Under the pieces are notes generated by a model, which worked only from the letters and a program-made list of their open reading frames with translations, had not been told where the DNA came from and searched no databases. A DNA stretch of 64,000 nt from Macrostomum lignano (Eukaryota), in contig NIVC01000924.1 in assembly GCA_002269645.1 (NCBI GenBank), positions 96,970 to 160,969 of the forward strand, read 5' to 3'. Positions 3,602 to 61,101 of the stretch are shown here, piece after piece (position 1 is the first letter of the stretch; every line of letters starts with the position of its first letter). The translations under genes were made by a program, and so were the position numbers.

Positions 3602-3789
3602 CTGCGGTAATGGTCGGATCGGATAGTCATTAGTTAGCTAGTAGCTCGCATGTGTTTAGCAAATTGAATAAAAATTGACTGCTGCTACTGGTAGTAGCAC
3701 TACCTACCTAGCCCAAGGCACTACCAACACTAATATTACTAAAACTACAACAAATATTACTACTAATAGTCCAAGTAATACTGCTAATA

Positions 3790-3824
3790 GTACACTACTA
3801 GCACTACTACTACTGCTACTACTG

Positions 3825-3862
<38 letters not shown>

Positions 3863-4990
3863 GTCTCCAAGTGAGAGGGAGTGAGAGGGAGTGAGAGGAA
3901 GCGAGAGTGAGAGAGTGAGAGGAAGCGAGAGTGAGAGAGTGAGAGGAAGCGAGAGTGAGAGGGACTGAGAGGAATCGAGAGGGAGTGACGGAGAGAGTGA
4001 GGGAGTGACGGAGAGTGAGAGAGAGTGACGGAGAGTGAGAGGGAGTGACGGAGAGTGAGAGGGAGTGACGGAGAGTGAGAGGGAGTGACGGAGAGTGAGA
4101 GGGAGTGACGGAGAGTGAGAGGGAGTGACGGAGAGTGAGAGGGAGTGAGAGGAAGCGAGAGGGAGTGAGATGGAGTGAGAGGAAGCGAGAGTGAGAGGGA
4201 GTGAGAGGGAGTGAGATGGAGTGAGAGGAAGCGAGAGTGAGAGGGAGTGAGAGGAAGCGAGAGGGAGTGAGAGGAAGCGAGAGGGAGTGAGATGGAGTGA
4301 GAGGAAGCGAGAGGGAGTGAGAGGGAGTGAGAGGAAGCGAGAGTGAGAGGGAGTGAGAGGAAGCGAGAGGGAGTGAGATGGAGTGAGAGGAAGCGAGAGT
4401 GAGAGGGAGTGAGAGGAAGCGAGAGGGAGTGAGATGGAGTGAGAGGAAGCGAGAGGGAGTGAGAGGGAGTGAGAGGAAGCGAGAGTGAGAGGGAGTGAGA
4501 GGAAGCGAGAGTGAGAGGGAGTGAGAGGAAGCGAGAGTGAGAGGGAGTGAGAGGAAGCGAGAGGGAGTGAGATGGAGTGAGAGGAAGCGAGAGGGAGTGA
4601 GAGGAAGCGAGAGTGAGAGAGAGTGAGAGGAAGCGAGAGGGAGTGAAAGTGAGAGGAAGCGAGAGGGAGTGAGAGGGAGTGAGAGGAAGCGAGAGGGAGT
4701 GAGAGGGAGTGAGAGGAAGCGAGAGTGAGAGAGAGTGAGAGGAAGCGAGAGTGAGAGAGAGTGAGAGGAAGCGAGAGGGAGTGACGGAGAGTGAGAGGGA
4801 GTGAGAGGAAGCGATCGAGGGAGTGAGAGGAAGCGAGAGGGAGTGAGAGGAAGCGAGAGTGAGAGAGAGTGAGAGGAAGCGAGAGTGAGAGAGAGTGAGA
4901 GGAAGCGAGAGGGAGTGACGGAGAGTGAGAGGGAGTGAGAGGAAGCGATCGAGGGAGTGAGAGGAAGCGAGAGGGAGTGACGGAGAGCGT
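3790..4990. repeat. (CTA)n tract followed by a ~1.1-kb purine-rich GAGTGAGAGG/GAAGCGA repeat
   Basis: Direct reading; RGS intron 1. Confidence 0.95.
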
Positions 4991-5017
4991 AGAGGGAAAG
5001 ACTCGATATGCCCTAAC

Positions 5018-5347
5018 CTGAGCATCCTCTGCATCGGTGTTACGCAGAAGCCAGCCGCACAGCTCCGACCCAGTGAAACAAGACGGCTGACAGGACATAA
5101 AGGATTTAACAGTGCGCACAGAGATGCCTGCGTCTTCCTGTTGTAGCCGTTCTAATAGTCGCTCTAGTCGGGACCATTGGTAAGCGTTGGGATGCGGCGG
5201 GCGGCCAGCCTCAGTGGTGACTGGTGCTGTTTTTGCTTTAGCGTGTCTGGCGTGGTGTCGCATTACTGAGGTGGATGTTGCACTGCTGCTGCTGCTGCTG
5301 CCAGCACTGCCGGAGCTGCAGGCAGCCTGAGTCTGTTGCTGCTGCAT
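5018..5347 (-). CDS. RGS7: R7-family regulator of G-protein signalling (RGS6/7, EGL-10/EAT-16-like), coding exon 1 (start of DEP domain)
   Basis: WSRLERLLERLQQEDAGISVRTVKSFMSCQPSCFTGSELCGWLL matches the RGS7 DEP start ([40 protein letters not shown]). ATG at 5347; phase-0 donor CAG|GTTAGG at 5017. Confidence 0.88.
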
Positions 5348-21824: not shown

Positions 21825-22009
21825 TAACTTTATTTATCGTTAGGCATGTACACTTCACTGTGCCTTGGGGGTTGGGCCTCAAGGGCATTAACTGCACGAG
21901 CAGAGTCAAGCCGAGATTCTAATTTAGCCTCAAATTAATGTGACTGCACTTGGAATCGAGCCTGGGCCGCCGGCACACCAGAGCCTGCGCTACCGCTGGG
22001 CTACGGCCC
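21825..22009 (-). mobile_element. tRNA-derived SINE-like element in 14-3-3 intron 3
   Basis: Minus strand GGGCCGTAGCCCAGCGGTAGCGC (A box)…GGCTCGATTCC (B box), with an AATAAA-containing tail. Confidence 0.55.
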
Positions 22010-22084
22010 GTCTGGCAACTGATAAGCTCTGTCCAATGCCAGCATCCTGCAGCAATTATTTTCTATCTGCTTCTGCCCTCCTTC

Positions 22085-22780
<696 letters not shown>

Positions 22781-22837
22781 GCCTACCAATTGATCGACTG
22801 TCCATCAATCTAGAATTATAATACAATCGCCACTCAC

Positions 22838-22933
22838 AGTGAGATTGTCGCGAAGCAGCTGCATAATAAGAGTCGAGTCTTTGTACGAGTCCTCGGCAAG
22901 CTCGTCCAGGGCAGCGATAGCGTCGTCGAATGC
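22838..22933 (-). CDS. 14-3-3: 14-3-3 protein, exon 3
   Basis: [32 protein letters not shown]; AAG acceptor, GTGAGT donor. Confidence 0.96.
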
Positions 22934-23037
22934 CTTGCAGTAGCAGTAAAATTAAAACAAAGGTAACAACCAGATTAAGAATCAGCTGATTAAAAAAGCC
23001 CAGAAGCCAACAGGTAAACAAAGGTAAACAAACCAAC

Positions 23038-23325
23038 CTTTTTAGCCAGCGCGCAAGCAGTTGTTGGCGAATTACGAATCTCGTAGAAGAACACGGAATA
23101 ATTGAGAGCCAGGCCGAGTCGAATTGGGTGAGTAGTAGCCAGTTCGCTCTCAGCGTAGCCAGTGGCGGCTTTGTAAGCCTGCTCAGAGCTGTCAACAACC
23201 GCGTCTCGTTCAACCCCGGAGGCCACCTCGGCTAGGTAGCGAAAATAGTCGCCCTTCATCTTGTAGTAGAACACCTTGGACTCGGGACTGGACGCGTTGG
23301 CAATGAGAAAGTCGTCAAGCAGGGT
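23038..23325 (-). CDS. 14-3-3: 14-3-3 protein, exon 2
   Basis: [34 protein letters not shown]…[19 protein letters not shown]; 288 bp, phase 0 at both ends. Confidence 0.97.
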
Positions 23326-25465: not shown

Positions 25466-26568
25466 GTTATCTACAAGGGGTGTCCAAAAAGTAGTAGGAA
25501 TTTTCAATGTAGTTCATACCTAGAGTCAGATATATAAATGGCATTGACATTTCATGAAAGCGGCTTTATCTATCTATGCAAAACATTTTGAATTATGTTA
25601 ATATCTACTGGCATTTAAAAGTTATGAGCAATTTAGTGCAGTTCCCAAGGTTATAACTTACAAAAAATGTCTTTGCCTAGGTTTTAAGCTTCACTTTATA
25701 CTTTTGACACACCATGTTTATGTGAAGATGCCAACAGATATGGTAACACATGCCTATGGGCTGAATACCAAAACTATGAATATATGTAGCATAATTATCA
25801 AAGCCAGGCAATGCTAAGCTTTATATGGATAGCACAGCTCAACCAGACATCTTGTCAGCTTGCGCTTCTGAAGCAACCAAGTTTGTACCAACATGTCAAA
25901 TATCCACTCAAAAGAGGGGCAGCACCGTGTCATTTTTACTCTATGGAGCCTTGGACTTAATGGATTGGAGATTTTAAGTAAACTATAACACATCCATCAT
26001 CCATAGACAGCATGTAGTGAGCAAAAGCACGGTTTACTAGTGGATTGAGGATGTTGTCATGCTTTGTTTTTATGACTACCTGTTAAAAGTTTCTATAAGT
26101 TATACCCTAGAGAACTGCACTAAATTGCTCACAACTCTTGAATGCCTTCTATACACTACTTTGCATCTTGGACTCTGGCTTACTATAATAGAACTAGGAT
26201 TTACCTAGTCATGATCATTATTATAAACAAAGAGATTAATTAGGCATTTATTTATTTAGGCAAATCATACATGTACAACCCCCTGATTTACACTGGCCAT
26301 GCAATTTACTTTTTGACCAAAAATGCAACTTACCTATGAAAGAAACCCTGAAGCAAATTATGTTACCCTTGCCACTGTGTTGGTGGTAAGGGCGTTTAAA
26401 CTGCAAGGGGAGGGGCTCGCTTGGCTGGGGCGGGTGCGTGCAGGGTGGCGTGTGCTGCGGGGGGCGGGGGGTCGCGGGGGTGCTAGCTTGATTTCTATTT
26501 AGTCCGGTCCTTTGCTTGTTCGCCGTGCGTTCGTGTTTGCTCAGATTTTTTTCTCAGCCACAATCAAT

Positions 26569-27654
26569 ATGGCCACCTCTAGTCAGCTGCAATCAGTCAC
26601 CAATCTGAGCGTGCCTCAACTAAAGACGGCATTGCAAGCGCGCAAATTACCAACAAAAGGTAGCAAGGCTGCCCTACGTACTTGTCTGTGCGACGCGATT
26701 CTCAACAAGCGTCTAGCTGCTGACACCGCGAACAGGACTTCCCACAGGGAGCCACCGTGGGATTCTGACGGCTCGTCCAATGGAGGGAGCAGCCGGCGGT
26801 CCAAGGGGGGTGGCACCTCTTTGGGTGGCGCGGCTCTGGATGAGGAGATCCAGCTCACCCGATGGCGCATTGAACTGCTAAGGCTGCAGAAAGAAGAGGC
26901 GGAGCTGCAACGGTCGGTGGATAAGGCACCAGATAATCGCGGTAAGCTACCAGAATTTTTGAGCCAGTCTGCTTGCGCTGAGTCTGATAGGTGGTCCAAT
27001 GATAGTGAACTTGATGCTGCTATTTTTGCTCCAAGCAACGCTAGAGTTATATCCGGGTGGCTGCTTCGTATTTGCGACTTCATTGATGCCCCTGGCCAGG
27101 CTGACGAGCTTCTTGCGCAGGGTGAGACAGCCAAGCAGAATCTCAAGAGCAGTAGACCAAAATCTGTAGACTCTGTGACAGTCGGCCAATGGATTTCTGC
27201 CAATGCTAAAATTATGTATGCCATGCTGCAATCCGGACAGCTAGCGTCTCACGACACCGATAGTGAGCCAAAAAGTCTCTTGGACTACTTGCAGCACGTT
27301 ATCCACATCGGCGATTTGCTTGATGGGGGGTACGACTGGCAAGTCCTTCTTCGTTATGATGACGACCTGCATAAGTTCCAGCATGCAAACGCCTCCAAGT
27401 GGTCCCAGCCGCCTTTGTCTTTGATTTGTAAGCACCTTATGGCCCCAAAGAACCTTCATAGTCGGCAAGCCAGCCAGACTGGCCGCGGAGGCCGCCAACA
27501 ATTCGCTTCGCGAGGCCAAGCGGTCTGTGGACTGTTTAACAGCGCTACCGGATGTCAGAGAGACACCTGCAACTATCTGCACTGCTGTCGGATTTGTGGT
27601 GGCTCACATGCTGCTGCTAGCCACACCAACCATGCTAATCAAGCAAAAAACTGA
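26569..27654 (+). CDS. Gag-like ORF1 (361 aa) with N-terminal SAP domain and C-terminal Cys/His finger
   Basis: LSVPQLKTALQARKLPTKGSKAAL (SAP); YDWQVLLRYDDDLH…W; CGLFNSATGCQRDTCNYLHCCRICGGSH, typical of Ngaro/DIRS gag. Confidence 0.8.
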   Translation: MATSSQLQSVTNLSVPQLKTALQARKLPTKGSKAALRTCLCDAILNKRLAADTANRTSHREPPWDSDGSSNGGSSRRSKGGGTSLGGAALDEEIQLTRWRIELLRLQKEEAELQRSVDKAPDNRGKLPEFLSQSACAESDRWSNDSELDAAIFAPSNARVISGWLLRICDFIDAPGQADELLAQGETAKQNLKSSRPKSVDSVTVGQWISANAKIMYAMLQSGQLASHDTDSEPKSLLDYLQHVIHIGDLLDGGYDWQVLLRYDDDLHKFQHANASKWSQPPLSLICKHLMAPKNLHSRQASQTGRGGRQQFASRGQAVCGLFNSATGCQRDTCNYLHCCRICGGSHAAASHTNHANQAKN

Positions 27655-31944: not shown

Positions 31945-33785
<1,841 letters not shown>

Positions 33786-38531: not shown

Positions 38532-39278
38532 ATGGGTTGCTGCCGAACCAGCCTTCTGACACTTTTAGCCCTCCTATTGCTGGCTAAACTGTCAACGGCT
38601 CTTGACTGCCCACCTCCGTACGCCATCGAGGCTGGCAAGTGTATTTATACTAGACGAAACGATATCTACACCTGGTGCCAGGCGAACGAAATCTGCCAGT
38701 CGATGGATGGCGAACTCATCAACCAGTACGAATCGTTGAAGGTGCTCGACAACATGCCCAGTGCAGTGTGTGCTGGCTGCAGGCTGTGGTACGGAGTCAG
38801 CGACCTGGCGGACGAGAGAGACACCCTTAAGGGCGGCTGGCAGCGGATCAACGACTATGGAAATGTACCCTACAACACCTCCCTGTGGTACATGGGTATG
38901 CCTAGTAGCCTTGGCAACCAGGACTGCATATCTAGCTCAACTGCCACTGTGCAGTTCATTGACACCGAGTGCTCAAACCTTCGCGGATTCATGTGCGAAT
39001 ACGTCGCCCCCAAGTCAACTGTTCCGGCTTTCAAGCTGGCCGTCTGGAAACGGACCCAGTTCAAACGGACCAGCTACAACTACGACGCTAACTACTGCTT
39101 CAAGGACGTCGAAGTGGACAGCGTGATTGAATGCGCCGCCGCTGCAACCAGCGAGGGCAGCACCAGGCGGGCTCTGTTAAACACGATGACTAAGAAGTGC
39201 CGTCTGCTGCAGTTCACGGATGCCCAGGTTGATGAATGGATTGAGACTGGCGCCAACTGGGTCAAGTTCAGCGTCTGA
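38532..39278 (+). CDS. Secreted C-type lectin-domain protein with a C-terminal PAN/apple-like module (248 aa, intronless)
   Basis: Signal peptide; CP…GKCIY…WCQANEIC….GEL; WYGVSD…G.WQ; DC…DTECSNLRGFMCE; then C…VDSVIECAAA…N…KKCRL. Confidence 0.85.
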   Translation: MGCCRTSLLTLLALLLLAKLSTALDCPPPYAIEAGKCIYTRRNDIYTWCQANEICQSMDGELINQYESLKVLDNMPSAVCAGCRLWYGVSDLADERDTLKGGWQRINDYGNVPYNTSLWYMGMPSSLGNQDCISSSTATVQFIDTECSNLRGFMCEYVAPKSTVPAFKLAVWKRTQFKRTSYNYDANYCFKDVEVDSVIECAAAATSEGSTRRALLNTMTKKCRLLQFTDAQVDEWIETGANWVKFSV

Positions 39279-39524
39279 AGATCTACCTGAATATGAGCAG
39301 GAATCGATCAAAAACATTAACTCTTTTTAAGCAGCAGAATTTTAATCAACACAAATATAACCAACTAGCCTATAAAAACGATTTTCGTTTGCAATAACAA
39401 CCCGACGAGTTTAGAGTTTTTCAAAAATAAAGTTAAGATTGTTAGCTATACTACTTTAAAGCGTAAATATCAGACCTGAGGATTATTGGTTGTTCCTCAA
39501 TCTATCAGATCTATCAATCTATGA

Positions 39525-39878
<354 letters not shown>

Positions 39879-40810
39879 TGAGCTACTAGCTTTATTACTC
39901 AATCCGCTAATCCTTGGCAATCACGGGAAGCTGATGCTGCAGAGAGATCCGGTGGTGCCAGTGTCCGCAGCGCGTTCCTCCCCCTCGAGTTCAGGAGGTG
40001 GATGGTTGCTCTCTCGGTAGCCCTTCGGTAACAGACGAGCTGGCAGAGCTGGCAGAGATTCTGGGGCCTGAAAAAGTCTGGAGAGGTCCGGGTTTTTTGG
40101 GCCAAGGCAGTCACAGATGCAGTGCTACAAATTCTCAAGAGCGGAGAGACAGAATGGTCATTCCTTAATTTGAGGATTTTTCCGTGAAGGTAGCGATGCC
40201 TGGCAAAAGCGGTGTAATTTCCTATTTGAAACAATTATTAAATCTGCTTTTCCGAGAGCCAGACAAATTTTACATCTATTCAAGCCTACAAACTCCCTAG
40301 CTAACCTAACAACAAACATATTACCTTGGCACACACTACTAACACGTTTAAACCCCAGAGAGAATTATCTCCGTAGATCTACAATACAACTAAAAAATAG
40401 ACGCTCGTATATTGCATAATTTTCACTGAACAATATGTGATGAATGATTTCAGAAAGCAATAAAAAATTTAAACTTTTCAGTAAGTTAAAACTAATTATT
40501 AATGCGCATACGATGCCGTAATTGTGCATTTCAAAATTTTATAAAGTCGTACCTCTTGGAGATAAAATAATATTTTTTAGAGTTTCAGTTGTTTTTTAAG
40601 TTGACCATGAGCACCATTTATGTGCAGATTCCCTGCAGTTGTCATCGATCCTTGACATCAGAAGGTAGTCTGCCATCTTTGTCAGGAGCACACTTCCGAT
40701 TGTAGAATTCTTCACTTAAAGAAGTAGGCATTGCGTTTGAAGTTGCCTGATATTTATCAACAATTTCCTAAACTTTAATACGGCTTAAAAGTAAATACTC
40801 GACAGAGAAT

Positions 40811-41749: not shown

Positions 41750-41887
41750 AACTTTTAGATAAGTTTAGTGTCTGCCATCCTACCTTATAGCGACTATTTT
41801 TAGTCTATGCCATAGACAGCGATGTACACAGTTAAGTAATTTGAATGAGAATCTCCGTGGGGTAATTAATACACCAAATGTTTGTCA

Positions 41888-42222
<335 letters not shown>

Positions 42223-43719
42223 TAAAAATTATTCTGCCCGTAAATACGCGCGAAGTTTTGAAAACTATATATACGCATGCCTAAATCTTTTAAGTATGTT
42301 GAAACGCTACGATTCCTGGTTGCAAGTAGGAAGCTCCGCAAGTGGATCTTGGATTCCCGATATGAGTATCTGATCTTGACTACTGCCGTCTCCTTACACT
42401 TAGGAAAGCGACAAGGTCTGTACAATATCCTAGCGCAGATATTTGTGGTAAATCCCTTTTTACTGTGTACTCCCTGTGAAACAGGCTGTGAAACAAATTA
42501 GGTCGTCGATGTTTTCTTAGAAATTCGAAGCTCTCCCAGCGCGTCCACATCATCGGATTCAGGCTCACCTGGCGTGAATACCATAGAAAGTGAAGACAAG
42601 ATTGCAGCTTCTCGTCTCGTCAGTCGTACAATCACAGAATACCACAGAATGCTCAATGGATTCAAGTAGAATGCGTCTCGAATTAAAACACCATAGATGC
42701 TACTCTTCCTGTGAAGATTTATAAGTAGTTGTAATTAATTGATAACATTAAAGTAGCAGTTTACTGCTTGTGCGAGCTCCTAGAGCAGCCGATGTAATTG
42801 GAATTATGCGATTGTTATAAAACTTAAGTGGCAAGATCTTATGGTGGTTAACAATCACTCAACCAGTATTGGATTCCATACCGCATAAGCAAAAAACTGT
42901 AAACAATTTGACTTAAGAACAATAAAAGGTTCATCAGTAGAAAGAATGTATAGTACACTTCTGCAGCGTTTAAGTAAACAAATTCAAAATTGAAAACAAT
43001 GTACTTGGGGATAAGGTTGAGGATCGTGAAGCGCAGCAGAAGCAGGACTGCAAGGGTCTGGCCGTGCTGACACTCTTCGAACTAACGGTGGCTTTTGTTT
43101 TCGTTCAACCGAGGAGCGTCCTTGTAAAAGTTCAATGCAGGATATGCACTGCTTAAAAGGCGCGTTCCCGGCTCGCGACGTTGATTTGGGCAGGTGTACA
43201 AATCATCCCTGAAGTGTTAACTGCACACAACCGCTCTCTTCCATTTGTGTTAGTTTGCTTTTCCCAGGAGGTCAGCTCGAAACAATCGCCGAGCCCAGTC
43301 TTCGCACCTGAAAGATGCAAGAGTTTGAACACTAAAGTGATTCTAAAATCAAAAAAGAAAACTCATACCACAGGAGTCAACTATGTGTTCTCTGAACTAC
43401 ATACCTTGCACTGTCTCCAGAAGGAAATGCATGAAATCGCGTCAAATGCGGGCACTTGTAGGCATAGGAATTGCAGCCATAAGCTGCGCACTGGGCTCGA
43501 GATTTTGTCATGATAGCACCGCACTGCTCTTCGCCTCAGAATAAAATAATGTTGTTGATCTACGACGTATGATTATTAAAAAAACAAAAGACAAAAATCA
43601 CAAGCCCATGCGAGTGATATCGTCTATGGTGATTCTTCTCCATACTACTTTCCCACAGCTTCACAGGAAGAGTAGCACAAAGCGAAAATTCCATTGAGAT
43701 TTTTTCTTCAGGGTGGCTG

Positions 43720-44017
43720 AAGTATACATTCTCCTCCTTTTCCCAGTGTGGCTATGGAAAAGTAAGTCCGAGGATGCATTTCTCAGGCCGAGGCTTCTGG
43801 CATTGCTACCTGCGTTTTTTTTGTAGATAGTGATAAACCGATTGAGGGTGAATGTACACTGGGGTGAGGGGTGAGTGTACATTCACCCTCAATCGGTTTA
43901 TCACTATCTACAAAAAAAAACGCAGGTAGCAATGCCAGAAGCCGAGGCCTTGAGAATATCATCCGAGGACTTTCTTTTCCATAGACATATTTGGAAAAAG
44001 GAGGAGAATGTATACTT
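43720..44017. repeat. Long palindrome (~140-bp arms, 13-nt spacer) upstream of the recombinase ORF
   Basis: Inner ~69 bp are a perfect inverted repeat apart from T8 vs A9; spacer GGGGTGAGGGGTG at 43861-43873. Confidence 0.95.
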
Positions 44018-44161: not shown

Positions 44162-45418
44162 ATGGAAGACGACTTAGATCTAGTGCTACGATATTTTGAA
44201 AGTAAAGAATCCGCTGCAACGAATCCTGCTGCTGGTAGTGATCGATTCGCTACGCTCTCGACTGACGAAATACAAGGGAAGCTGGACGCTGCTATCCCAC
44301 CAAATACGCGAAGGAAGGAACTATGGGCTGTAAGAATTTTTGACCAGTGGTTTGAGCAGCGACACAATCGAATTCTACATGGTGATACAACTGGCCTTCT
44401 CGTGTTGAAGGAGCGTCATGAATGGAACGCTTGCGATTGGAACTATCTATTAAAGATGTTCATTCTCGAGGTGCGAAAAGTCGATGGCACTAAATACAAT
44501 GCTACGACCCTTAGGGACATATTTTCCATGATGCAACACTATCTGCAGTACACGCTCAAGAAAGAACTGAATCTCTGGAAGGACGCTGCGTGCAGGGATG
44601 CAAGAATGGCATTGGATGCTGCCATGAAAGAAGCTACTAGAGAGGGCCTAGTTCCGGGGACAAATGCGTCTAGCCCAATTCCCGCAACTCTGGAGGAGGA
44701 GTTGTGGCAGAAAGGACGTCTTGCAACAACGTCGCCGAAATTACTGCTGTTTACGCTTGTGTTCTACCTTGGCAAGCAGTTCGCTTTGCGTGGAGGCACG
44801 GAGCTGCATGGTCTGAGATATAGCTGTGAGATCCAGTTGCAGCATGAAGACGGTCAAGAACTTCTAGTTTACTGTGAGAACAGAGCCACGAAGACCAACA
44901 ACGCTGGCATAAAGCGATGTTTTGTTCCATTGAAAACCGTTAAAGCATCTCATACTGCTGATCATGATAGATGTCTACCCTGCATCTACAAGCTGTATGT
45001 GGACAAAAGACCGGAAAACTGTACGGTTCAGAATTTGTTCCTGGCTTGGATGCGTAGCGATGCCAGCATCCAGCAAGGCAGGTGGTACCAAAACGCACCC
45101 GTCGGCCGGCACAGCTTCGACGGTATTGTTCGTGAATTAACGGCTCCCCTAACTGGAGTGACTGAGAGGTACACTAATCAGTCTCTACGCAAGACTTGCG
45201 CAAGTACTCTACACCGTGCTGGCTTTGCTAGAGAGGACATCGCTCGTGTTACAGGACACTCTTCGACAGCTATTGAGCGCTATATTCAGTTTGACGTACA
45301 AGACCATGTTAAAGTATCGCATGCTCTTCAATCTGGTGGTCAGTCATCAAGTCTGTCTATTGACACCGAGCCTGAACGCTCTGTTGAAGCTATGGAACAA
45401 AGTAACGTAGACTGCTAA
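44162..45418 (+). CDS. Crypton-type tyrosine recombinase (DUF3504/ZMYM-KCTD1-QRICH1-like), open 418-aa ORF
   Basis: FALRGGTELHGL (R), TKTNNAG (K), TNQSLR (H/QxxR), VTGHSS (H/W), IERY (Y); W…P.G motif WYQNAPVG. Confidence 0.9.
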   Translation: MEDDLDLVLRYFESKESAATNPAAGSDRFATLSTDEIQGKLDAAIPPNTRRKELWAVRIFDQWFEQRHNRILHGDTTGLLVLKERHEWNACDWNYLLKMFILEVRKVDGTKYNATTLRDIFSMMQHYLQYTLKKELNLWKDAACRDARMALDAAMKEATREGLVPGTNASSPIPATLEEELWQKGRLATTSPKLLLFTLVFYLGKQFALRGGTELHGLRYSCEIQLQHEDGQELLVYCENRATKTNNAGIKRCFVPLKTVKASHTADHDRCLPCIYKLYVDKRPENCTVQNLFLAWMRSDASIQQGRWYQNAPVGRHSFDGIVRELTAPLTGVTERYTNQSLRKTCASTLHRAGFAREDIARVTGHSSTAIERYIQFDVQDHVKVSHALQSGGQSSSLSIDTEPERSVEAMEQSNVDC

Positions 45419-45566
45419 TCCTGCAAAGAAAATGAGGCTTAACATCAATGGTAACACCAACACCGTTGAAATCGTTTTCGAGTGAGTGCTTACAAGACGC
45501 TTCTAAATCTTACTATTTGAACTTCCTGTTGTTGGTTTACATATGTTAAATACAACTGTTTATAGC

Positions 45567-45624
45567 AGGACTGAGAACCATTTCTCAGGCCTCGTTTGGG
45601 GACTGAGAAATGGTTCTCAGTCCT
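45567..45624. repeat. 22-bp-arm palindrome downstream of the recombinase ORF
   Basis: AGGACTGAGAACCATTTCTCAG [14 nt] CTGAGAAATGGTTCTCAGTCCT. Confidence 0.95.
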
Positions 45625-46056
45625 CCTACAACCGATAAATTACCATAGAAAAATATATCTATTATATTATACTATTATACGTATGTATATTGAGAATTTT
45701 TTCCAATGCTCGACCAATGCCTTACGCAATGCCAGATTTTTGCGCTCAGGCACCGAACTGAGACTTAAAACGGAGTTACAAGTATACAATTATCTGTGAA
45801 TAAGTAAAATTAACAGTTCACTACGGAAAGACTGGACTTGGTTAAATTAAAAACGTTCAATAAGACAAAGTTTATAGTTCTACTGAGATCTTAAACAGAG
45901 GGTAAATATAATTGGTGTTATATTTTTGTAAAACTGCTGATCAAGTCAATAGTTTTGCCATCAGGAGTCCGAGTTCAGAGTGAGTTGTCGTCAGTGCCAG
46001 CGAGTCTCAAGCTTTGATGAAGCGAGTTGGGTCTGAGATGTGGCTGCGGTTTACAT

Positions 46057-46251
46057 TTAACCAAGCCTAACCCTGACCCTAGCCCTGATGAACTTCTTGG
46101 CGTTGTGAACGGCCTCCTCCGACATGCTGGACTCGTCCACGTTGGACAGAGCCTCCAGATCGGCCATGGCCTCAGCCTTCTCCTCCTGGGTGGGCTCGGC
46201 GACAGCCAGGGCTGCGCACAGCAAAAGTCCGAGAGCGAGTTGCCACTTCAT
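46057..46251 (-). CDS. 64-aa secreted prepropeptide (signal, acidic pro-region, KK, FIRARVRVRL-G)
   Basis: MKWQLALGLLLCAALAVA signal; GC-rich coding-like composition; dibasic site; terminal Gly then stop. Confidence 0.72.
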   Translation of the reverse strand: MKWQLALGLLLCAALAVAEPTQEEKAEAMADLEALSNVDESSMSEEAVHNAKKFIRARVRVRLG

Positions 46252-47308
46252 AATTGCTTGAGTAGGATTGATATTCGAGTGTTTGAGCTAAGTCGAGTCT
46301 GGAGCTTGTTATCTTGAGCAGTTGGCAGATGCGAATTTATGCGCATCGGATTGGCACGTGTTTCCGCGGTCGGAGCAGCGGCGTTGGCTGAGTTGAAAGC
46401 GTTCGTGTGAGCAGGGCGGAGCAGAGACTGTACGGCTTGTCTATATGTTTAACAGGCAGAATTTGTTTGCTAGATGACCTATGCAATCAAATGGTATCTT
46501 GAGTTTTCTTATAACTCTTTATGACTTTTATTGACACTTCGCATGCATAGTAAATTTGAATGACAGTCGCTCAGGCAGTTGCACAGAATTAGGATGTCAG
46601 TAAAACCGTGACTTCAATTGTGACGTAACAACCCTTGAGTTGTCAGGGGTATTCTTGAACTCCACTCCCAGACTCCCAGCTGTGGAGACATTCTTGAGAC
46701 TTCTTGACATTTCTAACTTGCATTTTAAGCTTGTAAAGCAACACTTTGCGATGAAACGTCAGATTTATTCTCCAAAAATAACGAGCATGAAGTCATGTAA
46801 CATACTACAACAACACAAACTTCGTGGTTTTTCGTAAACTACAAAGCGTTGCTTTACGCTCAAATTTGTCACAGACAAAATGTTCTGCTTTGCCCATAGG
46901 GTCAACAGTCTGAAAGGGGGGATCCTCATGTTTTTGGCGTATTCCCAGCTACAGCCTTTTGAAATTAGAACCTGTCTCTTTTTGATAGTAGTATTTGAAG
47001 TTGCTGTTTTATATACTGGCATTCCTCAAGGTCAAAAGCCTACGAGCGACTCTCTGTCTGGGAAGATCCACAGGACTATAACAAATGCTCTAAAAATAGT
47101 AACAGTCTCCTGTGCAAACTGTCTATGGCCGCTGGCTTAGGTAATTTTGATTGAAAATCGAAGTCTGTGTCCCTCAGCTAAGCCGTACAGTGCCACATCA
47201 CATCAAGCCGAGCGAAAACAAGCCTCGAGCAACGCCGAAATTTCAATCGAAAACTTAGAAATCATCAATTGCACTTTAGCTAACCAAAGCAATTCATAGT
47301 TCGACACA

Positions 47309-50300
47309 ATGTCTGAAGAAGTGAGCACTCCCGGTAGCACTACTGATCGACTAATGCGAATGCAGCTGTCCCCATCGGCTCCAACCGCAGCCAATGTCGG
47401 AGAGTCTCCAGCACCCGAGGCCGAAGATCTCGACGAGTTAATCGCGCAAATAGTCAGCAACGATCCGCCGACGCGATTTTTTGGCATACAAAATCTGCGC
47501 CGACGTGTCTGCGACGATCGCGAAAGCTCCTATGCCAGACTGTTGCGCAGCCCCGCTTTCGATGTGATTCTTGAAGGCCTGGGCAATAGTCAGCTACCGG
47601 ACATGCAGTACGAATGCGCCTGGGTGCTGACCAATCTGCTGTCTGGCCGACAGGAGAAGTTCGACCTGCTAGCCCGAGGAGGTCTCTGCCAGCCGTTGGT
47701 GAAGCTGCTGGACGCTGGCGCTTCAGCCGATCGAACTCGTGAACAAGCTTGCTGGGCTCTTGCCAACATTGTCGGCGAATGTGCCGAATGGCGCGACCAA
47801 ACTTTGGTCTGCGGCCTCCTGCCAGCGCTGACCTCGCTGCTGGACTCTCGACCATCGTCCGGCGTGTTGGATGCCACTTCGCTGCTGCTAGTGAATCTGT
47901 TCCGCGATCACGAGCCGCGAGTCAGCTTTGAAGTGGCCAAGACTTTGGTGCCCTACCTGATGCAGCTGATGGATCATCCGCATAGGTAAGCTGAGATCAG
48001 TGGTGTACGCTGGTAGTTGCAGGCCGAAACCCTCAGGGAGCCAACAATAGGTGCGTGTTTGGAGGGGCCAGCCGTCTCTTGGTGTGTGTGGGTGTCCCTG
48101 TCTCTTAATGTTGGGTGTCCCTGTCTCTTAATGTTGAGTGTCCCTGTCTCTTAATGTTGGGTGTCTCTGTCTCTTAATGTTGGGTGTCCCTGTCTCTTAA
48201 TGTTGGGTGTCCCTGTCTCTTAATATTGGGTGTCCCTGTCTCTTAATGTTGGGTGTCCCTGTCTCTTAATATTGGGTGTCCCTGTCTCTTGATGAGTAGG
48301 CGTCCCTGTCTTTTGGTGTGTAGGCGTCCCTGTCTTTTGGTGTGTAGGCGTCCCTGTCTTTTGGTGTGTAGGCGTCCATGTCTTTTGGTGTGTATAGGTG
48401 TCCCTGTCTCTTAATGTTGGGTGTCCCTGTCTCTTAATGTTGGGTGTCCCCGTCTCTTAATGTTGGGTGTCCCTGTCTCTTAATGTTGGGTGTCCCCGTC
48501 TCTTAATGTTGGGTGTCCCTGTCTCTTAATGTTGGGTGTCCCTGTCTCTTAATGTTGGGTGTCCCTGTCTCTTAATGTTGGGTGTCCCCGTCTCTTAATG
48601 TTGGGTGTCCCTGTCTCTTAATGTTGGGTGTCCCTGTCTCTTGTTGTGTTGGAGTCCCTATCTCTTGTTGTGATGGAGTCTCTGTCTCTTGTTGTGGTAG
48701 AATCCCTGTCTCTTGTTGTGGTGGAGTCTCTGTCTCTTGTTGTGGTAGAATCCCTGTCTCTTGTTGTGGTGGAGTCCCTGTCTCTTGTTGTGGTAGAATC
48801 CCTGTCTTTTGTTGTGGTGGAGTCCCTGTCTCTTGTTGTGGTAGAATCCCTGTCTTTTGTTGTGGTGGAGTCTCTGTCTCTTGTTGGGTGGGTGCCATTG
48901 TCTTTTCGGTATTCGGAGGTTCGTCTTATTTCAGATGGAGAACTAACACACAAAAGCCAACAGCCAACTATAACACAGACTCTCCAGACACCTTAGTGCC
49001 ATCAATACGCACATGTCGTCACGAATACAAATCTTAATAATAGGCCTGGCTTTCTTTCTAAATGGTCGAATACGAATGACAGTTACACTTTGAAAGCCAG
49101 GCAGTAAAACTTCGATTGACTTTTAGAAGATCTGTATATCAAAAAGTCTCCGTGCATTTCAAAAGCTCAAATGCCCACCTCAACTCTCAGGTCTCTCGTT
49201 CCTCACCTACTTTGGGCAATGTCCTACCTCATCGAAGATAGCGAGCCAAGAGCCAGCCTCCTACTCAGGGAAGATGTGCTTCATCATTTGCGACGCTGTT
49301 TAACAAGCGGAGACGACAACGAGTTAATACCTGCTCTGCGAGTGTTTGGCAATTTCGCCTCGTCCATGACTCTGCTGCCAAACTGCGTGCTGGCAGACAA
49401 TCTGCTAGCCAAGATGAGACCTCTGCTTGACCATTCGGACGCCAAGGTTCGCCTGCAGGTGCTGTTCTTCACCAGCATCGCGTCGGACGGACCGGACACC
49501 TTCCTGGACCAGATCGCCGATGCTGGTTTCCTGCCTCGCGTTGGCCAAATTCTATTAGAAGCTGACGAGCGCGAGAAACGCGAAGCCTTCTGGATTGTAC
49601 CGAACTTTGTCATCACTAGGGGCAACAAGTTTGTAAGCTATTTGCAAGGTTAAACGAACATGTTTAAACTAGCCGATTTAAATTATTATTTATTTTGCAA
49701 CTAAAATATTTTATAAATTGCATAATCCCGCATCCTGCGGCTTCCACTCAATTGTACACGAATCACGTGACACCTATCCAGGAATCCAGGAAATGGCACC
49801 TATTTACGACTCAAAGTCGCACCTATCCACCAATCACTCATCGCACCTATCCACCAATCACTCATCGCACCTATCCACCAATCACTCATCGCACCTATCC
49901 ACCAATCACTCATCGCACCTATCCACCAATCACTCATCGCACCTATCCACCAATCACTCATCGCACCTATCCACCAATCACTCATCGCACCTATCCACCA
50001 ATCACTCATCGCACCTATCCACCAATCACTCATCGCACCTATCCACCAATCACTCATCGCACCTATCCACCAATCACTCATCGCACCTATTCACCAATCG
50101 CACGTCTCACCTACTCACACTCCGTTGTCTTTCACAGAAAAATCTCGTCGTCGAGAACTGTCTGGAAGGCTTCCTGGAGACGCTGACCCTGTCGGACACC
50201 GAGCTCACCCACTGCGTGCTGCTAAGCGTTCGCGAACTTCTAATCAGCGCTGCCAGACGCAAATCCGAAGACAGCGGTCAAAGTTTCGAATCGTTGCGCA

Positions 50301-51376
50301 AACAAATCGAACACTGCGGCGGATTAAAAAAGATCGAATTGGTGCAGAATTTGGCCGACAACGATTTGGCTCAGATGAGTCGACAGATTATTGACGACTT
50401 TTTCGTTCACAATGGAGCGCTTTATGAGACCAACTCCGCTGCCGGTCTGGATGAAGGAGCGAACCCTGGTTCTGAGCCAGCTGCAGATGTAGGAGAGGTG
50501 GGGGCTGAGGCTGCTGGTGAGACTGCCAATGAAGCTATCAACCAAGCTACAAATGAAGGTACCAACGAAACTACAAATGAAGGTAACAACCAAGCTACCA
50601 ACCAAGCTACAAATGAAGGTACCAATGAAACTACCAATGAAGGTACTAACCAAGCTACCAACCAAGCTACAAATGAAGGTACCAACGAATCTACCAACCA
50701 AGCTACAAACGAAACTACCAACGAAGCCACAAACCAAGCTACCAACGAAGCTACCAACCAAACTACAAATGAAGGTACCAACGAAGCTACCAACGAAGCT
50801 ACCAACCAAGCTACAAACGAAGGTACCAACCAAGCTACAAACGAAGGTACCAACCAAGCTACAAACGAAGGTACCAACCAAGCTACAAACGAAGGTACCA
50901 ACCAAGCTACAAACGAAGGTACCAACCAAGCTACAAACGAAGGTACCAACCAAGCTACAAACGAAGGTACCAACCAAGCTACAAACGAAGGTACCAACCA
51001 AGCTACAAACGAAAGTACCAACCAAGCTACAAACGAAGGTAGCAACCAAGCTACCAACCAAGCTACCAACCAAGCTACCAACCAAGCTACAAATGAAGGT
51101 ACCAACGAAGCTACCAACCAAGCTACAAACGAAGCTACCAACCAAGCTACAAACGAAGGTACCAACCAAGCTACCAATGAAGGTACCAACGAAGCTACGA
51201 ACGAAACTACCAACGAAGCTACGAATCAAGCTACCAATCAAACTACCAATAAGGCTACGAATGAGGCTACCAACGAAACTGCAAATGAATTTACTAACGA
51301 AGTCGGAATGGAGACAGTAAACAGGATTGCGCAGCCAACGCTCGAGGTGGCCAATGAAAAGATTGCTAGCGAATGA
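47309..51376 (+). CDS. Divergent importin-alpha (ARM repeats); exons 47309-47985, 49191-49632, 50138-51376; ~785 aa
   Basis: QYECAWVLTNLLSG, EQACWALANIVGE, LLWAMSYL, PALRVFGNF, KREAFWIVPN, IEHCGGLKKIELVQ are importin-alpha ARM motifs. GT-AG junctions are in phase. Confidence 0.85.
48085..48895. repeat. 21-bp minisatellite GGGTGTCCCTGTCTCTTAATG(TT) and derivatives in importin intron 1
   Basis: Direct reading. Confidence 0.93.
49818..50097. repeat. 24-bp minisatellite CACCTATCCACCAATCACTCATCG, ~11.5 copies, in importin intron 2
   Basis: Direct reading. Confidence 0.96.
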
Positions 51377-58116: not shown

Positions 58117-61101
58117 TCTATATATATATCCAATATACTAAAAATGGTCTGTCTGTGTCTATCTATCTATCTATGTGATCGATTAGAGAAAAAATGGCTG
58201 GACGGATTTTGTTCGAACTTGCACTGTTCGATCAGAAATTTTCCCGTGACTGTACATGCATCGTGGCTAAGAAATTGCTCGATGCTAAAGGCATTAAATA
58301 TTCGAAAAACATGCTTTTTTGCAAAGGTCAAGCAAACTTTTCGACTTGAAATGCATTGTAAGAATGCTAGAGAAAAAACTGACTGGTTGAATTCTGATTC
58401 TGAAATAGATTGCATCATAACTGAATTGTAACTCCGACTTGAATTGAAAATGCAGTTTGGAAGCGTAGCACCAGACTTGATTTAAATTGCGTAACCATGC
58501 ATATTGTTAACTGATACTGACTGACTGAGAAATTGATTATGTCATAACTGCTTTGTGTGATTTACTCTATGCTTGGATTTTAAAGTGTTGAATTATATAA
58601 GTGCAAAATTTGATGAGAGCTAGCCTAGAGGTGAACAAACTGAACTGCTAAATGCAGCGACGATGGTTCGAATTTTCATAGAGTATAATTTTTTTATTAA
58701 AGCTTTTCAACGTCAGGAAAACTAAAAGACTTTTTAAAAAGAAGCGTCATGTAAAAAATCATAGAAGCGTCATATAAAAAATCATAGAAGCGTCATGTAA
58801 AAATCATAGAAGCGTCATGTAAAAAATCATAGAAGCGTCATATAAAAAATCATAGAAGCGTCATTTAAAAAATCATAGAAACGTCATGTAAAAATCATAG
58901 AAGCGTCATGTAAAGAATCATAGAAGCGTCATGTAAAAAATCGTAAAAACGTCATATAAAAATCATAGAAGCGTCATGTAAACAATCATAGAAACGTCAT
59001 GTAAACAATGATAGAAGCGTCATGTAAACAATCATAGAAGCGTCATGTAAAGAATCGTAGAAGCGTCATGTAAAAAATCATAGAAGCGTCATGTAAAAAA
59101 TCGTAGAAGCGTCATATAAAAATCATAGAAGCGTCATTTAAAAAATCATAGAAGCATCATGTAAAAAATCATAGAAGCGTCATGTAAAGAATCGTAGAAG
59201 CGTCATGTAAAAAATCATAGAAGCGTCATGTAAACAATCATAGAAGCGTCATGTAAAAAAGTCATAGAAGCGTCATGTAAACAATCGTAGAAGCGTCATA
59301 TAAAAAATCATAGAAGCGTCATGTAAAAAATCGTAAAAGCGTCATATAAAAATCATAGAAGCGTCATGTAAACAATCATAGAAGCGTCATGTAAAAAATC
59401 ATACAAGCGTCATGTAAACAATCATAGAAGCGTCATGTAAACAATCATAGAAGCGTCATGTAAAGAATCGTAGAAGCGTCATGTAAAGAATCGTAGAAGC
59501 GTCATGTAAAGAATCGTAGAAGCGTCATGTAAAAAATCATAGAAGTGTCATGTAAAAAAGTCATAGAAGCGTCATATAAAAATCATAGAAGCGTCATTTA
59601 AAAAATCATAAGAGCGTCATGTAAAAAATCATAGAAGTGTCATGTAAAGAATCGTAGAAGCGTCATATAAAAATCATAGAAGCGTCATGTAAACAATCGT
59701 AGAAGCGTCATGTAAACAATCGTAGAAGCGTCATATAAAAATCATAGAAGCGTCATGTAAACAATCATAGAAGCGTCATGTAAAAAATCATAGAAGCGTC
59801 ATGTAAAAAAGTCATAGAAGCGTCATGTAAACAATCGTAGAAGCGTCATATAAAAATCATAGAAGCGTCATTTAAAAAACCATAGAAGCGTCATGTAAAC
59901 AATCATAGAAGCGTCATGTAAACAATCATAGAAGCGTCATGTAAACAATCATAGAAGCGTCATGTAGAAATCCAAAGAAGCGTCATGTCAGACATTGAAG
60001 GTGTCATGTAAAAATTGAATGAAGCTATAGTACAGTGCTGTGCTGGGGAGAATTACTGAGACGTCAAGGCTCACAGAGAATAACTGAGATTACAGGTGGG
60101 GGGGGTTTCTGAGATGTCAAAGCAAAAGTCAGAAGCTACTTCAAAGTTCATGTACTTTACTCAATTTTTTATTGCATTCTTTGTTGGCTCGCCACGGGGG
60201 GTGCTGATAGAAGCAGAGTCATGTAAAAAATAAAAGTAGCACTACGTATACATAAAAGAAAAGTCATGTCGAAGTTAAAATATTCATTTGGGAATTGCTA
60301 CAATGTCAAAGCTTGGTGGAAATCGTTATAGTGCTTGATTCTTAAAGAAGGAATCACTAAAATGTCAAGGCTTAGGGGAGAAGAATTGCTGAGATTTCAA
60401 GGCTTTAGGTTGGGTTAAAGTTAGGTTTAGGTCAGGTGTGGGTTGAGGGTTATATTTTATCGGGTTTCAAGGTTAACAGAATAACAGGGGATTTTTTAGA
60501 TTTCAAGGTTTATGGGGGCCATCGCTGACATGTTAAGGCTTACGGGGGGAATAGCTGAGATGTCAAGGCTCACGGGGTATAAATGAGATTTCAAGGCTAA
60601 AGTCAGAAGCTACATGTAGTTTATTGAAAACTTTTTATTACATTATTTGATGCCTCCTCAGGGGAGGGATTGCTGATAGAAAAAGCGTAATGTAAAAAAT
60701 AAAAGAAGCTTCATGTCGAAGTTAAGAGATTCATTTGGGAATCCCTACGATGTCGAGGCTTGCAGGGAATCGCTATAATGCTGTAGTAGTGCTATAATGA
60801 CTCAGAATTACTGAAATTTCAATGTTTTAGGGTAAGGTTAGGGTTAGGGTTAGGGTTAGGCTAGGGTTAGGGTTAGAAGGTTAACAGATATTTTTAGATT
60901 TCCAAGGCTTATTGGGAGCATTGCTGAGATGTCAAGGGGGGAAGTTGATATGTTAAAGCTTGTGGGGGGGGGGAATTACTGACATGTCCAGGCTTACAAG
61001 GTTTGACAAGAGATTTTTTAAGATTTCAAGGATACATGTAGCTTATTAAAAAAACGTGTATTGCATTTCTTTGGCTCCCCAACGGGGGCGTAGATTGCTA
61101 G
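58117..61101 (+). mobile_element. Non-autonomous Helitron-like element 2 with a ~1.25-kb 21-22-bp minisatellite (GAAGCGTCATGTAAAAAATCATA; 58738-59990)
   Basis: 5' TCTATATATATA…GTCTGTCTG…ATGGCTGGACGGATTT; 3' CCCCAACGGGGG then GATTGCTAG|T. Confidence 0.65.
60827..60876 (+). repeat. Short interstitial (TTAGGG)n tract inside Helitron-like element 2
   Basis: About 8 imperfect hexamers. Confidence 0.85.

Follow-up and report, generated by a model that had tools for sequence, protein, structure and literature searches.

Within the 64,000-nucleotide stretch of Macrostomum lignano contig NIVC01000924.1 (assembly GCA_002269645.1) analysed here, referred to as the window, there is a real, intronless prepropeptide gene whose 64-residue product consists of a signal peptide, an acidic pro-piece, a dibasic processing site and a ten-residue peptide, FIRARVRVRL, that is followed by glycine and the stop codon. 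The open reading frame (ORF), the family to which it belongs and the conservation of that family are direct observations. The initial annotation of this stretch had described the gene as an orphan, but it belongs to a large multigene superfamily in which the same secretory cassette precedes a wide range of mostly cationic C-terminal peptides (payloads). We consider that the gene, together with the processing model described below, most plausibly specifies a secreted, membrane-active host-defence (antimicrobial) effector, and we place the probability of this reading at about 0.55.

Architecture of the precursor

The window is 100 % identical to locus L001. The ORF lies on the minus strand, which the initial annotation had not stated, with its ATG at 46251–46249 and its TAA at 46059–46057. 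Translation of 46251–46057 yields MKWQLALGLLLCAALAVAEPTQEEKAEAMADLEALSNVDESSMSEEAVHNAKKFIRARVRVRLG followed by the stop, in exact agreement with the 18-residue signal, 33-residue acidic pro-region, KK, FIRARVRVRL and Gly-stop originally described. The signal peptide (residues 1–18, MKWQLALGLLLCAALAVA; 46198–46251, minus strand, as for all segments of the gene) was read by inspection of the sequence and comprises an n-region with Lys2, a 14-residue hydrophobic core and A-V-A at −3/−1, after which cleavage is predicted. It is followed by the acidic pro-piece (residues 19–51; 46099–46197), which has 33 residues, a net charge of −9 and the conserved motif LEALSN-DESS-SEE. The dibasic processing site, Lys52-Lys53 (46093–46098), is invariant in 12 of the 12 sequences of alignment A1. 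The predicted mature peptide FIRARVRVRL (46063–46092), with a charge of +5 if amidated, is encoded by AGG-GYN hexamer repeats, its Arg-Val codons reading AGG GCT AGG GTC AGG GTT AGG CTT. Gly64, the putative amide donor, and the TAA stop occupy 46057–46062, where GGT TA[A/G] AT is invariant across 11 copies.

Within the acidic pro-piece, an S-x-E motif (Ser44 and Glu46; window 46111–46122) is invariant in the window gene and all paralogues. This motif fits the consensus of the secretory-pathway kinase Fam20C, and phosphorylation at this site would increase the negative charge of the pro-piece. An AlphaFold2 prediction of the precursor gave helices throughout at a predicted local distance difference test score (pLDDT) of 66 and a predicted template-modelling score (pTM) of 0.35, and was uninformative.

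In the processing model, signal peptidase would cut after Ala18, and the acidic pro-piece would neutralise the cationic C-terminus and escort it through the regulated secretory pathway. A prohormone convertase would cut after Lys52-Lys53, and Gly64 would be converted to an amide by PHM/PAL, yielding the ten-residue FIRARVRVRL-NH2 with a charge of +5. As a β-strand, this peptide would present its Arg and hydrophobic side chains on opposite faces. The mature amide is predicted to act on membranes as a secreted host-defence effector. Flatworms are documented to possess PC2 as well as PHM and PAL, the amidating enzymes (PMC9042389).

A 64-codon ORF is in itself unremarkable, because 58 ORFs of at least 50 residues overlap the 12 kb around the gene. 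It is the conservation across copies of the architecture, the promoter block and the transcription unit that places this ORF above chance.

A superfamily with one secretory cassette and many payloads

Relatives were sought by a profile search against 1.84 billion representative proteins and by two word-indexed searches. The first homologue search recovered 11 M. lignano paralogues at 67–89 % identity, all of which have the same signal peptide, acidic pro-piece, KK, short alternating peptide and Gly-stop. The initial annotation had proposed looking for paralogues that keep the KK…Gly-stop design, and these sequences do. Their peptides include FVRVRVRL, FVRVRARIRL, WLRVRARVRI, IFRVRARIHI, FVRVHVRF, IFRVRVRI and FIHIHF. 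The profile search and a search with a diverse alignment extended the superfamily to ~28 clusters at 90 % identity (~70 protein sequences). All of the entries are M. lignano 'hypothetical protein' records except P0016 and P0005, the latter carrying a SERPIN name in UniRef. Among the hits whose source was looked up, none came from beyond M. lignano save one contig of unknown origin. This is the 929-bp genomic contig from run SRR31628392 that encodes P0016 (L008 541–813), the only member outside the reference assembly. A third homologue search, with P0016 as the query, returned no new members, and cross-species conservation thus rests on this one 929-bp contig of unknown species.

A six-frame scan of the fetched loci showed that all 28 copies (28/28) are intact, intronless, 60–90 codons long and of the same architecture, in a count that includes the window locus three times (syntenic L001–L003) and the single copy of L008. 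The copies lie mostly in tandem arrays, with two copies 2.8 kb apart in L004 and likewise in L005, and with denser arrays of five copies within 20 kb (L006) and five within 17 kb (L012). Within the 64-kb window no family copy was found besides the gene described here; the sole extra tblastn match was a tract at ~60.8 kb.

Divergent payloads stand behind the same prepro region, including GFHVHFH-G, FHLHLP-GK, FRIRIRWGRVARNVLRLL-GK, WRIRFRRIRIRWRRVYRVVRTAYRIYRHLPFP-GK, WRIKSACKIFRRLLHLARKCYAKK-G and WRRRRRFRWRKAIRVAGKVAKAVL, as well as the Pro/Arg-rich FLRVRLPRVRMPRVRLPRVRLPRLRVRFRWSKK. The short ones are (Arg/His-hydrophobic)n amides and the long ones Arg/Trp-rich, Pro/Arg-rich or Cys-loop peptides; one type, AVYKPNYYKD, is non-cationic. 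The payload of P0016 is Pro/Arg-rich and derives from a 15-nucleotide (nt) repeat, CCG AGG GTC CGT CTG, which encodes PRVRL. An amidation signal (a G or G-K end) is present in 28 of the 34 distinct precursors, and KK is present in 10 of 11 subfamilies, the exception having E-K.

Two members depart from these patterns. The AVYKPNYYKD member (L014 6001–6198) is without a cationic payload, an amidation signal and a TATA-like box, retains the signal peptide and the GGAAAAACGTGCC element, and may be a decaying or re-purposed copy. P0032 (contig NIVC01000181.1) ends in WLRVRARVRV-G-SRRRSRSG, that is, an RV-type peptide with eight additional residues up to a new Gly-stop, and looks like a stop-loss variant that would represent another route of payload diversification.

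In a Pfam scan of 13 members, none reached a gathering threshold, the chimeric model P0002 (see below) aside. The candidate PF22991 (Lock_Gag1-like) scored 14.1 bits with the window protein against a threshold of 27, and only P0002, in which the acidic segment is duplicated, reached it, at 27.1 bits. This match was judged to be a chance match to the acidic helix. By these searches the superfamily is unannotated and apparently Macrostomum-restricted.

Transcript models and splicing

Three contigs of the assembly carry an annotated gene of one exon for the identical protein. At the window locus the model is one unspliced, transcript-derived exon of 195 nt, and the models of the paralogues stop at the same Gly-stop, which answers, at the level of gene models, the call of the initial annotation for an unspliced transcript. 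Because the Mlig_3_7 annotation was derived from RNA-seq transcripts (StringTie/TACO plus de novo assembly), with ORFs called by TransDecoder and new transcripts below 0.5 reads per kilobase per million mapped reads dropped (PMC5730564), these models speak, indirectly, for transcription and for an ORF that is not spliced.

An earlier concern was that AGG|GT in the Arg-Val codons could serve as a splice donor. This caveat is answered by the transcript-derived models, which are unspliced and, in the paralogues, end at the Gly-stop. The sole model with a splice inside the RVRAR codons is P0005, known only from UniRef and MetaClust, which we infer to be an older model of ab initio origin; in the same gene group, the model derived from transcripts reads through these codons with no splice. 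P0005, named 'SERPIN domain-containing' in UniRef, was rejected as a mis-spliced and mis-named model. P0002 (85 residues; L005 10001–12935) was also rejected, as a chimeric model that fuses two tandem copies into a 'spliced' protein. P0028 is an annotation artefact with an antisense-derived extension at its start.

The other two contigs that encode the identical protein (L002 and L003) are syntenic copies of the window locus, whose flanks have diverged by substitutions and many indels. Within them, a 700-nt island (window 45852–46551), extending from ~300 nt upstream of the ATG to ~200 nt beyond the stop, exhibits only 0–2 differences among the three copies.

A promoter block common to the family

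The initial annotation had pointed to a TATA-like CATAAAT motif ~90 bp upstream. This motif is located at 46341–46335 (minus strand), 90 nt before the A of the ATG, and is real in that it lies within a conserved E-box/CCAAT/TATA module common to the family. In the window, the block (GGAAACACGTGCCAATCCGATGCGCATAAATTCG; 46332–46365, minus strand) consists of the E-box CACGTG (46360–46355), CCAAT (46354–46350) and CATAAAT. The pattern upstream of the copies is GGAAACACGTGCCAATC-N-R-ATG-Y-GCATAAATTC, or in its short form GGAAACACGTGCCAAT…CATAAAT. Across 11 copies from two subfamilies, 31 of the 34 columns are invariant, and the block is therefore more conserved than the coding sequence. This element of about 33–34 nt has one match in the window and none in 100 shuffles of the window, and it occurs exactly once per gene copy in L001–L007 and nowhere else in these loci.

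Divergent subfamilies and L008 have the form CCGGAAA[A/C]ACGTGCC, ~12 nt and [C/T]ATAAAT, ending 80–117 nt before the ATG; in L008, a recognisable block lies 117 nt before the ATG, and several divergent copies carry the canonical TATAAAT. The block is found in all cationic subfamilies, and the TATA element is lost only in the non-cationic, non-amidated AVYKPNYYKD member. The use of one promoter module across the family implies that its members share a single regulatory programme.

The 5'-partial, transcript-derived model P0004 is collinear with the genome and begins ~51 nt before the ATG, ~30–36 nt past the TATA-like box. Transcription would accordingly start ~30–36 nt downstream of this box, and the putative start region and 5' untranslated region (UTR) span 46252–46311 (minus strand). 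Further upstream, an E-box-like distal element (CAGTCTCTGCTC...CTCAC[A/G][C/T]G; 46398–46430, minus strand) of putative function is partly conserved among the paralogues and degenerate in the window copy (CTCACACG). On the other side of the gene, the 3' UTR region (45852–46056, minus strand) contains a conserved TGATCAG...TTTTACAAAAATATAACA ~110–150 nt past the stop, which is partly kept among the paralogues.

Constraint, charge coupling and peptide shape

Comparison of two RV subfamilies revealed that constraint is graded along the gene. The signal peptide is the most constrained part, with a ratio of non-synonymous to synonymous differences per site (pN/pS) of 0.16 and almost all columns invariant, whereas the pro-piece is about neutral at the residue level (pN/pS 1.00). 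The mature part has a pN/pS of 0.57 and exhibits the highest divergence (pS 0.59, pN 0.34), with the hydrophobic/basic alternation kept.

The length of the pro-piece is near constant (31–38 residues), and its net charge ranges from −4 to −12, mirroring payload charges of +1 to +14. Pro-piece and payload charge are correlated with a Spearman ρ of −0.67 over sequences and of −0.95 over 11 subfamily means, values that are descriptive and not strict tests because the sequences are related. In the window gene, a pro-piece of −9 is set against a mature peptide of +5.

The hydrophobic moment of FIRARVRVRL is 1.41 at 180° versus 0.17 at 100°. This is the maximum for its composition and is reached by 3.6 % of shuffles. 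All of the short payloads likewise have their largest hydrophobic moment at the β-strand period (160–180°). Their length steps by one hexanucleotide, giving 6, 8 or 10 residues among the paralogues.

The AGGGTC/AGGGTT codons had been flagged in the initial annotation as telomere-like, and they are: 21 of the 24 best bases of the window gene match (TTAGGG)n, within a range of 19–21 of 24 for the payload DNA of its subfamily. The sister subfamily encodes the same peptide pattern in CGT, CAT and CGC codons, of which 9–15 of 24 bases match. A captured telomere repeat was considered as the source of the payload, which is possible but unsupported, since only the subfamily of the window is telomere-like; slippage of the AGG-GYN unit is enough to explain the resemblance. 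Elsewhere in the window, an interstitial telomere-like tract (60826–60877) contains ~8 TTAGGG units with a few variants. Its tblastn match to the mature peptide arises because one frame reads RVRVRV.

Relation to known peptide systems

Prepropeptide genes that join a conserved secretory cassette to a hypervariable cationic payload are of a well-known kind, while the family itself appears to be new, with no homology to known families detectable by sequence. Frog-skin antimicrobial peptide (AMP) precursors (temporin/brevinin/palustrin, dermaseptin-type) share with it the conserved signal, acidic pro-piece, dibasic site, hypervariable cationic C-terminus and multi-copy loci. Temporins are 8–14 residues long and are amidated through a G or GK signal. 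A negative relation between pro-piece and mature charge, which in the frog temporin/brevinin/palustrin genes has been read as coordinated evolution (PMC7106915), is also found in the Macrostomum family. The Macrostomum site, however, is KK and not KR, the short payloads have β-strand and not helical periodicity, and the animals belong to different phyla. The Pfam model of frog skin active peptides, FSAP_sig_propep, had no match at E ≤ 1 among 13 family members. By this comparison the resemblance is one of analogy and not of homology.

Cathelicidins (bactenecin, indolicidin, PR-39/Bac5-type) similarly combine a conserved pro-region with diverse cationic payloads, and the Macrostomum family has a Pro/Arg-rich repeat type (P0016, FLRVRLPRVRMPRVRLPRVRLPRLRVRFRW) and Arg/Val-rich short peptides comparable to theirs. 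In contrast to this vertebrate family, which relies on elastase-type release and not on KK cleavage and amidation, the Macrostomum pro-piece has only 31–38 residues (33 in the window gene), with no cathelin domain and no Pfam match.

Among synthetic peptides, the designed β-sheet amphiphiles (X1Y1X2Y2)n-NH2 (IRIKIRIK-NH2) and the hairpin gels (PEP6R, VKVRVRVRV-pP-TRVRVRVKV) share the hydrophobic/Arg-Lys alternation, 8–12 residues per strand and the C-terminal amide. The natural FIRARVRVRL differs from them in having two N-terminal hydrophobic residues and an Ala, and its activity is only predicted.

The description of the peptide as 'undescribed' stands, as the records list the members as hypothetical proteins, the mis-named P0005 aside, and no searchable paper text contains the peptides or gene IDs. 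A query with 12 family gene IDs and with the peptide sequences gave no match in such texts, and the Macrostomum literature on neuropeptides, antimicrobial peptides, single-cell data and immunity yielded nothing on the peptide family.

Evidence bearing on a host-defence role

The family evidence favours host defence because the payloads are hypervariable and cationic, the pro-pieces are charge-matched, the genes lie in tandem arrays and the family is lineage-restricted. In addition, the longer members resemble antimicrobial peptides of the classical Arg/Trp-rich, Pro/Arg-rich and Cys-loop types. In the accessible part of its S5 list, an independent machine-learning screen of helminths (Irvine et al. 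2023, PMC10414684) includes BOX15_Mlig024774g1, its companion g2 and Mlig001477g4, all of the same superfamily, as AMP-like, with last-column scores of 100 and 82 that we take as percentage agreement among predictors. We count these calls on longer members toward host defence. The entries appear there as a two-member 'same genome' group and an 'ungrouped' item and not as a family, and other cleavage products were predicted. The short RVRV, His-type and window members are not among the entries listed in that part of S5, and no superfamily entry is among the peptides reported as tested in the accessible part of the study. Designed (hydrophobic-cationic)n amides such as IRIKIRIK are bactericidal by membrane disruption (PMC4330034), and Arg/Val-alternating hairpin gels kill bacteria on contact (PMC8442837).

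Several points weigh against this reading. The relatives are not independent, and both the charge correlation and the count of amidation signals therefore overstate the evidence. Transcript support is firmer for the family than for the window locus, because reads from near-identical paralogues multi-map. Some models in dense arrays extend through the TATA-like block, perhaps by read-through, which makes the transcription start uncertain. The mature peptide, its amidation and its antimicrobial activity are predictions. A product of 6–10 residues ending in R-[LIF]-amide is also typical of a neuropeptide, and the FIHIHF-, GFHVHFH- and FHLHLP-amides would be almost uncharged at sea-water pH, a poor fit to an electrostatic mode of action. 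Salt weakens short cationic peptides. M. lignano is cultured in sea water (PMC5730564). Finally, the family gene IDs were found in no accessible expression table, and no tissue or condition of expression emerged from these tables; six of the 12 IDs do not occur in the supplements of four papers (PMC12896417, PMC5730564, PMC5816591, PMC5946080), and six IDs of a second, overlapping set do not occur in those of PMC12732829.

Alternative readings

That the gene encodes a neuropeptide or peptide-hormone precursor, whose amidated -RL, -RI, -RF or -HF products act on receptors or peptide-gated channels in the manner of FMRFamide-like peptides, we regard as unlikely. The canonical design of helminth neuropeptides combines a signal peptide with a dibasic site and a Gly at the C-terminus, and the flatworm FMRFamide-like and other amidated neuropeptides also resemble the family in their shortness and their R-hydrophobic-amide ends (PMC9042389); several paralogues even end in -VRF-Gly (FVRVHVRF, IFRVHVRF). 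Neuropeptide families, however, normally conserve their C-terminus, whereas here it varies (L, I, F, H, P), the window peptide ending in R-L-Gly with no fixed motif. The same prepro region and promoter also drive peptides of 18–33 residues with charges of +7 to +14, which do not resemble neuropeptides, there is one peptide per precursor in dozens of tandem copies, and the profile and word-indexed searches found no relatives in other flatworms or lophotrochozoans among the hits whose source was looked up, one contig of unknown origin apart. The scaling of pro-piece charge with payload charge points instead to the neutralisation of a toxic cargo. Fast-evolving, lineage-restricted, tandem secreted peptides are also typical of venom and reproductive proteins, and another secreted role, as a cytolytic toxin or a deterrent aimed at prey or predators, as a reproductive (seminal-fluid) peptide or with the acidic pro-piece as the product, is a rather improbable further reading. 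The conserved residues of the pro-piece, including the invariant S-x-E, are compatible with the last of these, but the pro-piece is about neutral at the residue level and its charge follows that of the payload, not the reverse. The distinction between a toxin and an AMP is partly a question of the target that is named, because a membrane-active toxin and an AMP share their mechanism. By far the least probable case, a chance ORF, pseudogene or annotation artefact (a telomere-like repeat ORF or the first exon of a longer spliced gene), is largely refuted. The similarity of the mature region to (TTAGGG)n, which also occurs as a tract in the window, and the splice donor used in P0005 speak for it; against it are the intact copies of uniform architecture, the graded constraint, the conserved promoter, the transcript-derived single-exon models and the encoding of the same pattern by a second subfamily in codons that are not telomere-like.

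A self-assembling secretory peptide, in which the alternating amides form cross-β fibrils or gels in salty sea water of pH 8, is unlikely as well. Such peptides could be a component of mucus, rhabdites or adhesive, or a granule-storage amyloid, with metal binding by the His forms and with the killing of microbes as a side effect or not at all. The maximal hydrophobic moment of the short peptides at 160–180° fits this proposal, as do the salt-triggered gels that VRVRVRV-type strands give (PMC8442837), and the acidic pro-piece would hold the peptides soluble until cleavage in a worm that lives in sea water. The FIHIHF-, GFHVHFH- and FHLHLP-amides are close to the designed catalytic-amyloid heptapeptides acetyl-IHIHIQI-amide and acetyl-LHLHLRL-amide, which at pH 8 assemble into amyloids that bind Zn, in their hydrophobic/His alternation, length and amide (PMC10008563). 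This likeness, however, covers paralogues and not the Arg peptide of the window, the natural N-terminus is free, and assembly, Zn binding and catalysis would follow by analogy with designed peptides. The basis of the proposal as a whole is such analogy; moreover, the +5 charge of FIRARVRVRL opposes assembly, and the proposal does not accommodate the long members of helical, Pro-rich and Cys-loop type. A more elaborate version, which on the same analogies is quite improbable, would see the family as a natural library of ultrashort (6–10 residue) amidated (Arg-hydrophobic)n and (His-hydrophobic)n β-strand amphiphiles that are kept soluble by a charge-matched acidic pro-piece and self-assemble in sea water into a cross-β antimicrobial or adhesive gel. 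Its His forms would perhaps be metal-binding or catalytic, and its payload exon would diversify by slippage of telomere-like hexanucleotides.

If the host-defence reading is correct, this would be the first large, genomically defined host-defence family in a flatworm, and it would have arrived independently, by convergence, at the frog-skin design of a fixed cassette that carries a hypervariable, charge-balanced payload. A phylum-wide survey of 2023 described the flatworm AMP repertoire as undescribed and reported the classical lophotrochozoan AMP groups to be lacking (PMC10414684). M. lignano is a model with transgenesis, RNA interference and a transparent body (PMC5730564), and a reporter built on the promoter block, which is compact and invariant, could readily reveal the cells that produce the peptides and any immune induction. 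Among the family's natural peptides are very short ones, of Arg/Val, Arg/Trp, Pro/Arg and His-alternating types, that would be cheap to synthesise and test. If the role is neural or structural instead, the family would still show with unusual clarity how rapidly payloads can turn over while the prepro and promoter cassette in front of them stays fixed.

Neighbourhood of the gene

A secreted C-type lectin had been named as a neighbour of the peptide gene. The lectin is real, being encoded by a 248-residue ORF with a signal-like N-terminus (38532–39278, plus strand) that matches Pfam Lectin_C at 27.8 bits against a cut-off of 22.6, but it lies 6.8 kb away and nothing links it to the peptide gene.

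Closer to the gene, an intact 418-residue ORF (44162–45418, plus strand) contains DUF3504 (8.7e-20), a QRICH1-like domain and a weak phage-integrase (tyrosine recombinase) match, and is a Crypton-type element or a domesticated derivative of one. It is convergent with the peptide gene, ends 640 nt from the stop of the latter and is also present in the syntenic copy L002. Hairpins flank this ORF on both sides. The one at 43800–43935 is a 136-nt palindrome, near-perfect and with 100 % complementary arms of 46 nt and 23 nt, which appears to be absent from L002, as judged from a break in the blastn alignment, and at 45560–45631 there is an inverted repeat with 32-nt arms and an 8-nt loop. The two hairpins may be foldback insertions, insertions resembling miniature inverted-repeat transposable elements, or the ends of the element.

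On the opposite side, a multi-exon armadillo/HEAT-repeat gene (47309–51376, plus strand) is divergent from the peptide gene, the two ATGs lying ~1 kb apart. Long low-complexity repeats, namely (HLSTNHSS)n and ~60 NEGTNQAT-like octapeptides, interrupt or extend this gene, which is annotated at 552–574 residues in the syntenic loci. Farther away, a 380-residue ORF (26512–27654, plus strand) with an N-terminal SAP domain (5.3e-07) and a Cys/His-rich C-terminus (CQRDTCNYLHCCRICGGSH) may be derived from a mobile element.

The window also contains very long micro- and minisatellite tracts at 3704–5347 (minus strand), 21940–23213, 32626–33776, 39490–40020, 41840–42425 and 48250–49040, which were recognised only as repetitive translations in the ORF lists. 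These translations include (SLSVCL)n, (SIYL)n, a serine run of ~130 codons and TDRQ/PQQET-type repeats, and a weak DEP-domain match directly adjoins one of the tracts. Several 2-kb bins owe their strong GC and AT skews to these satellite tracts.

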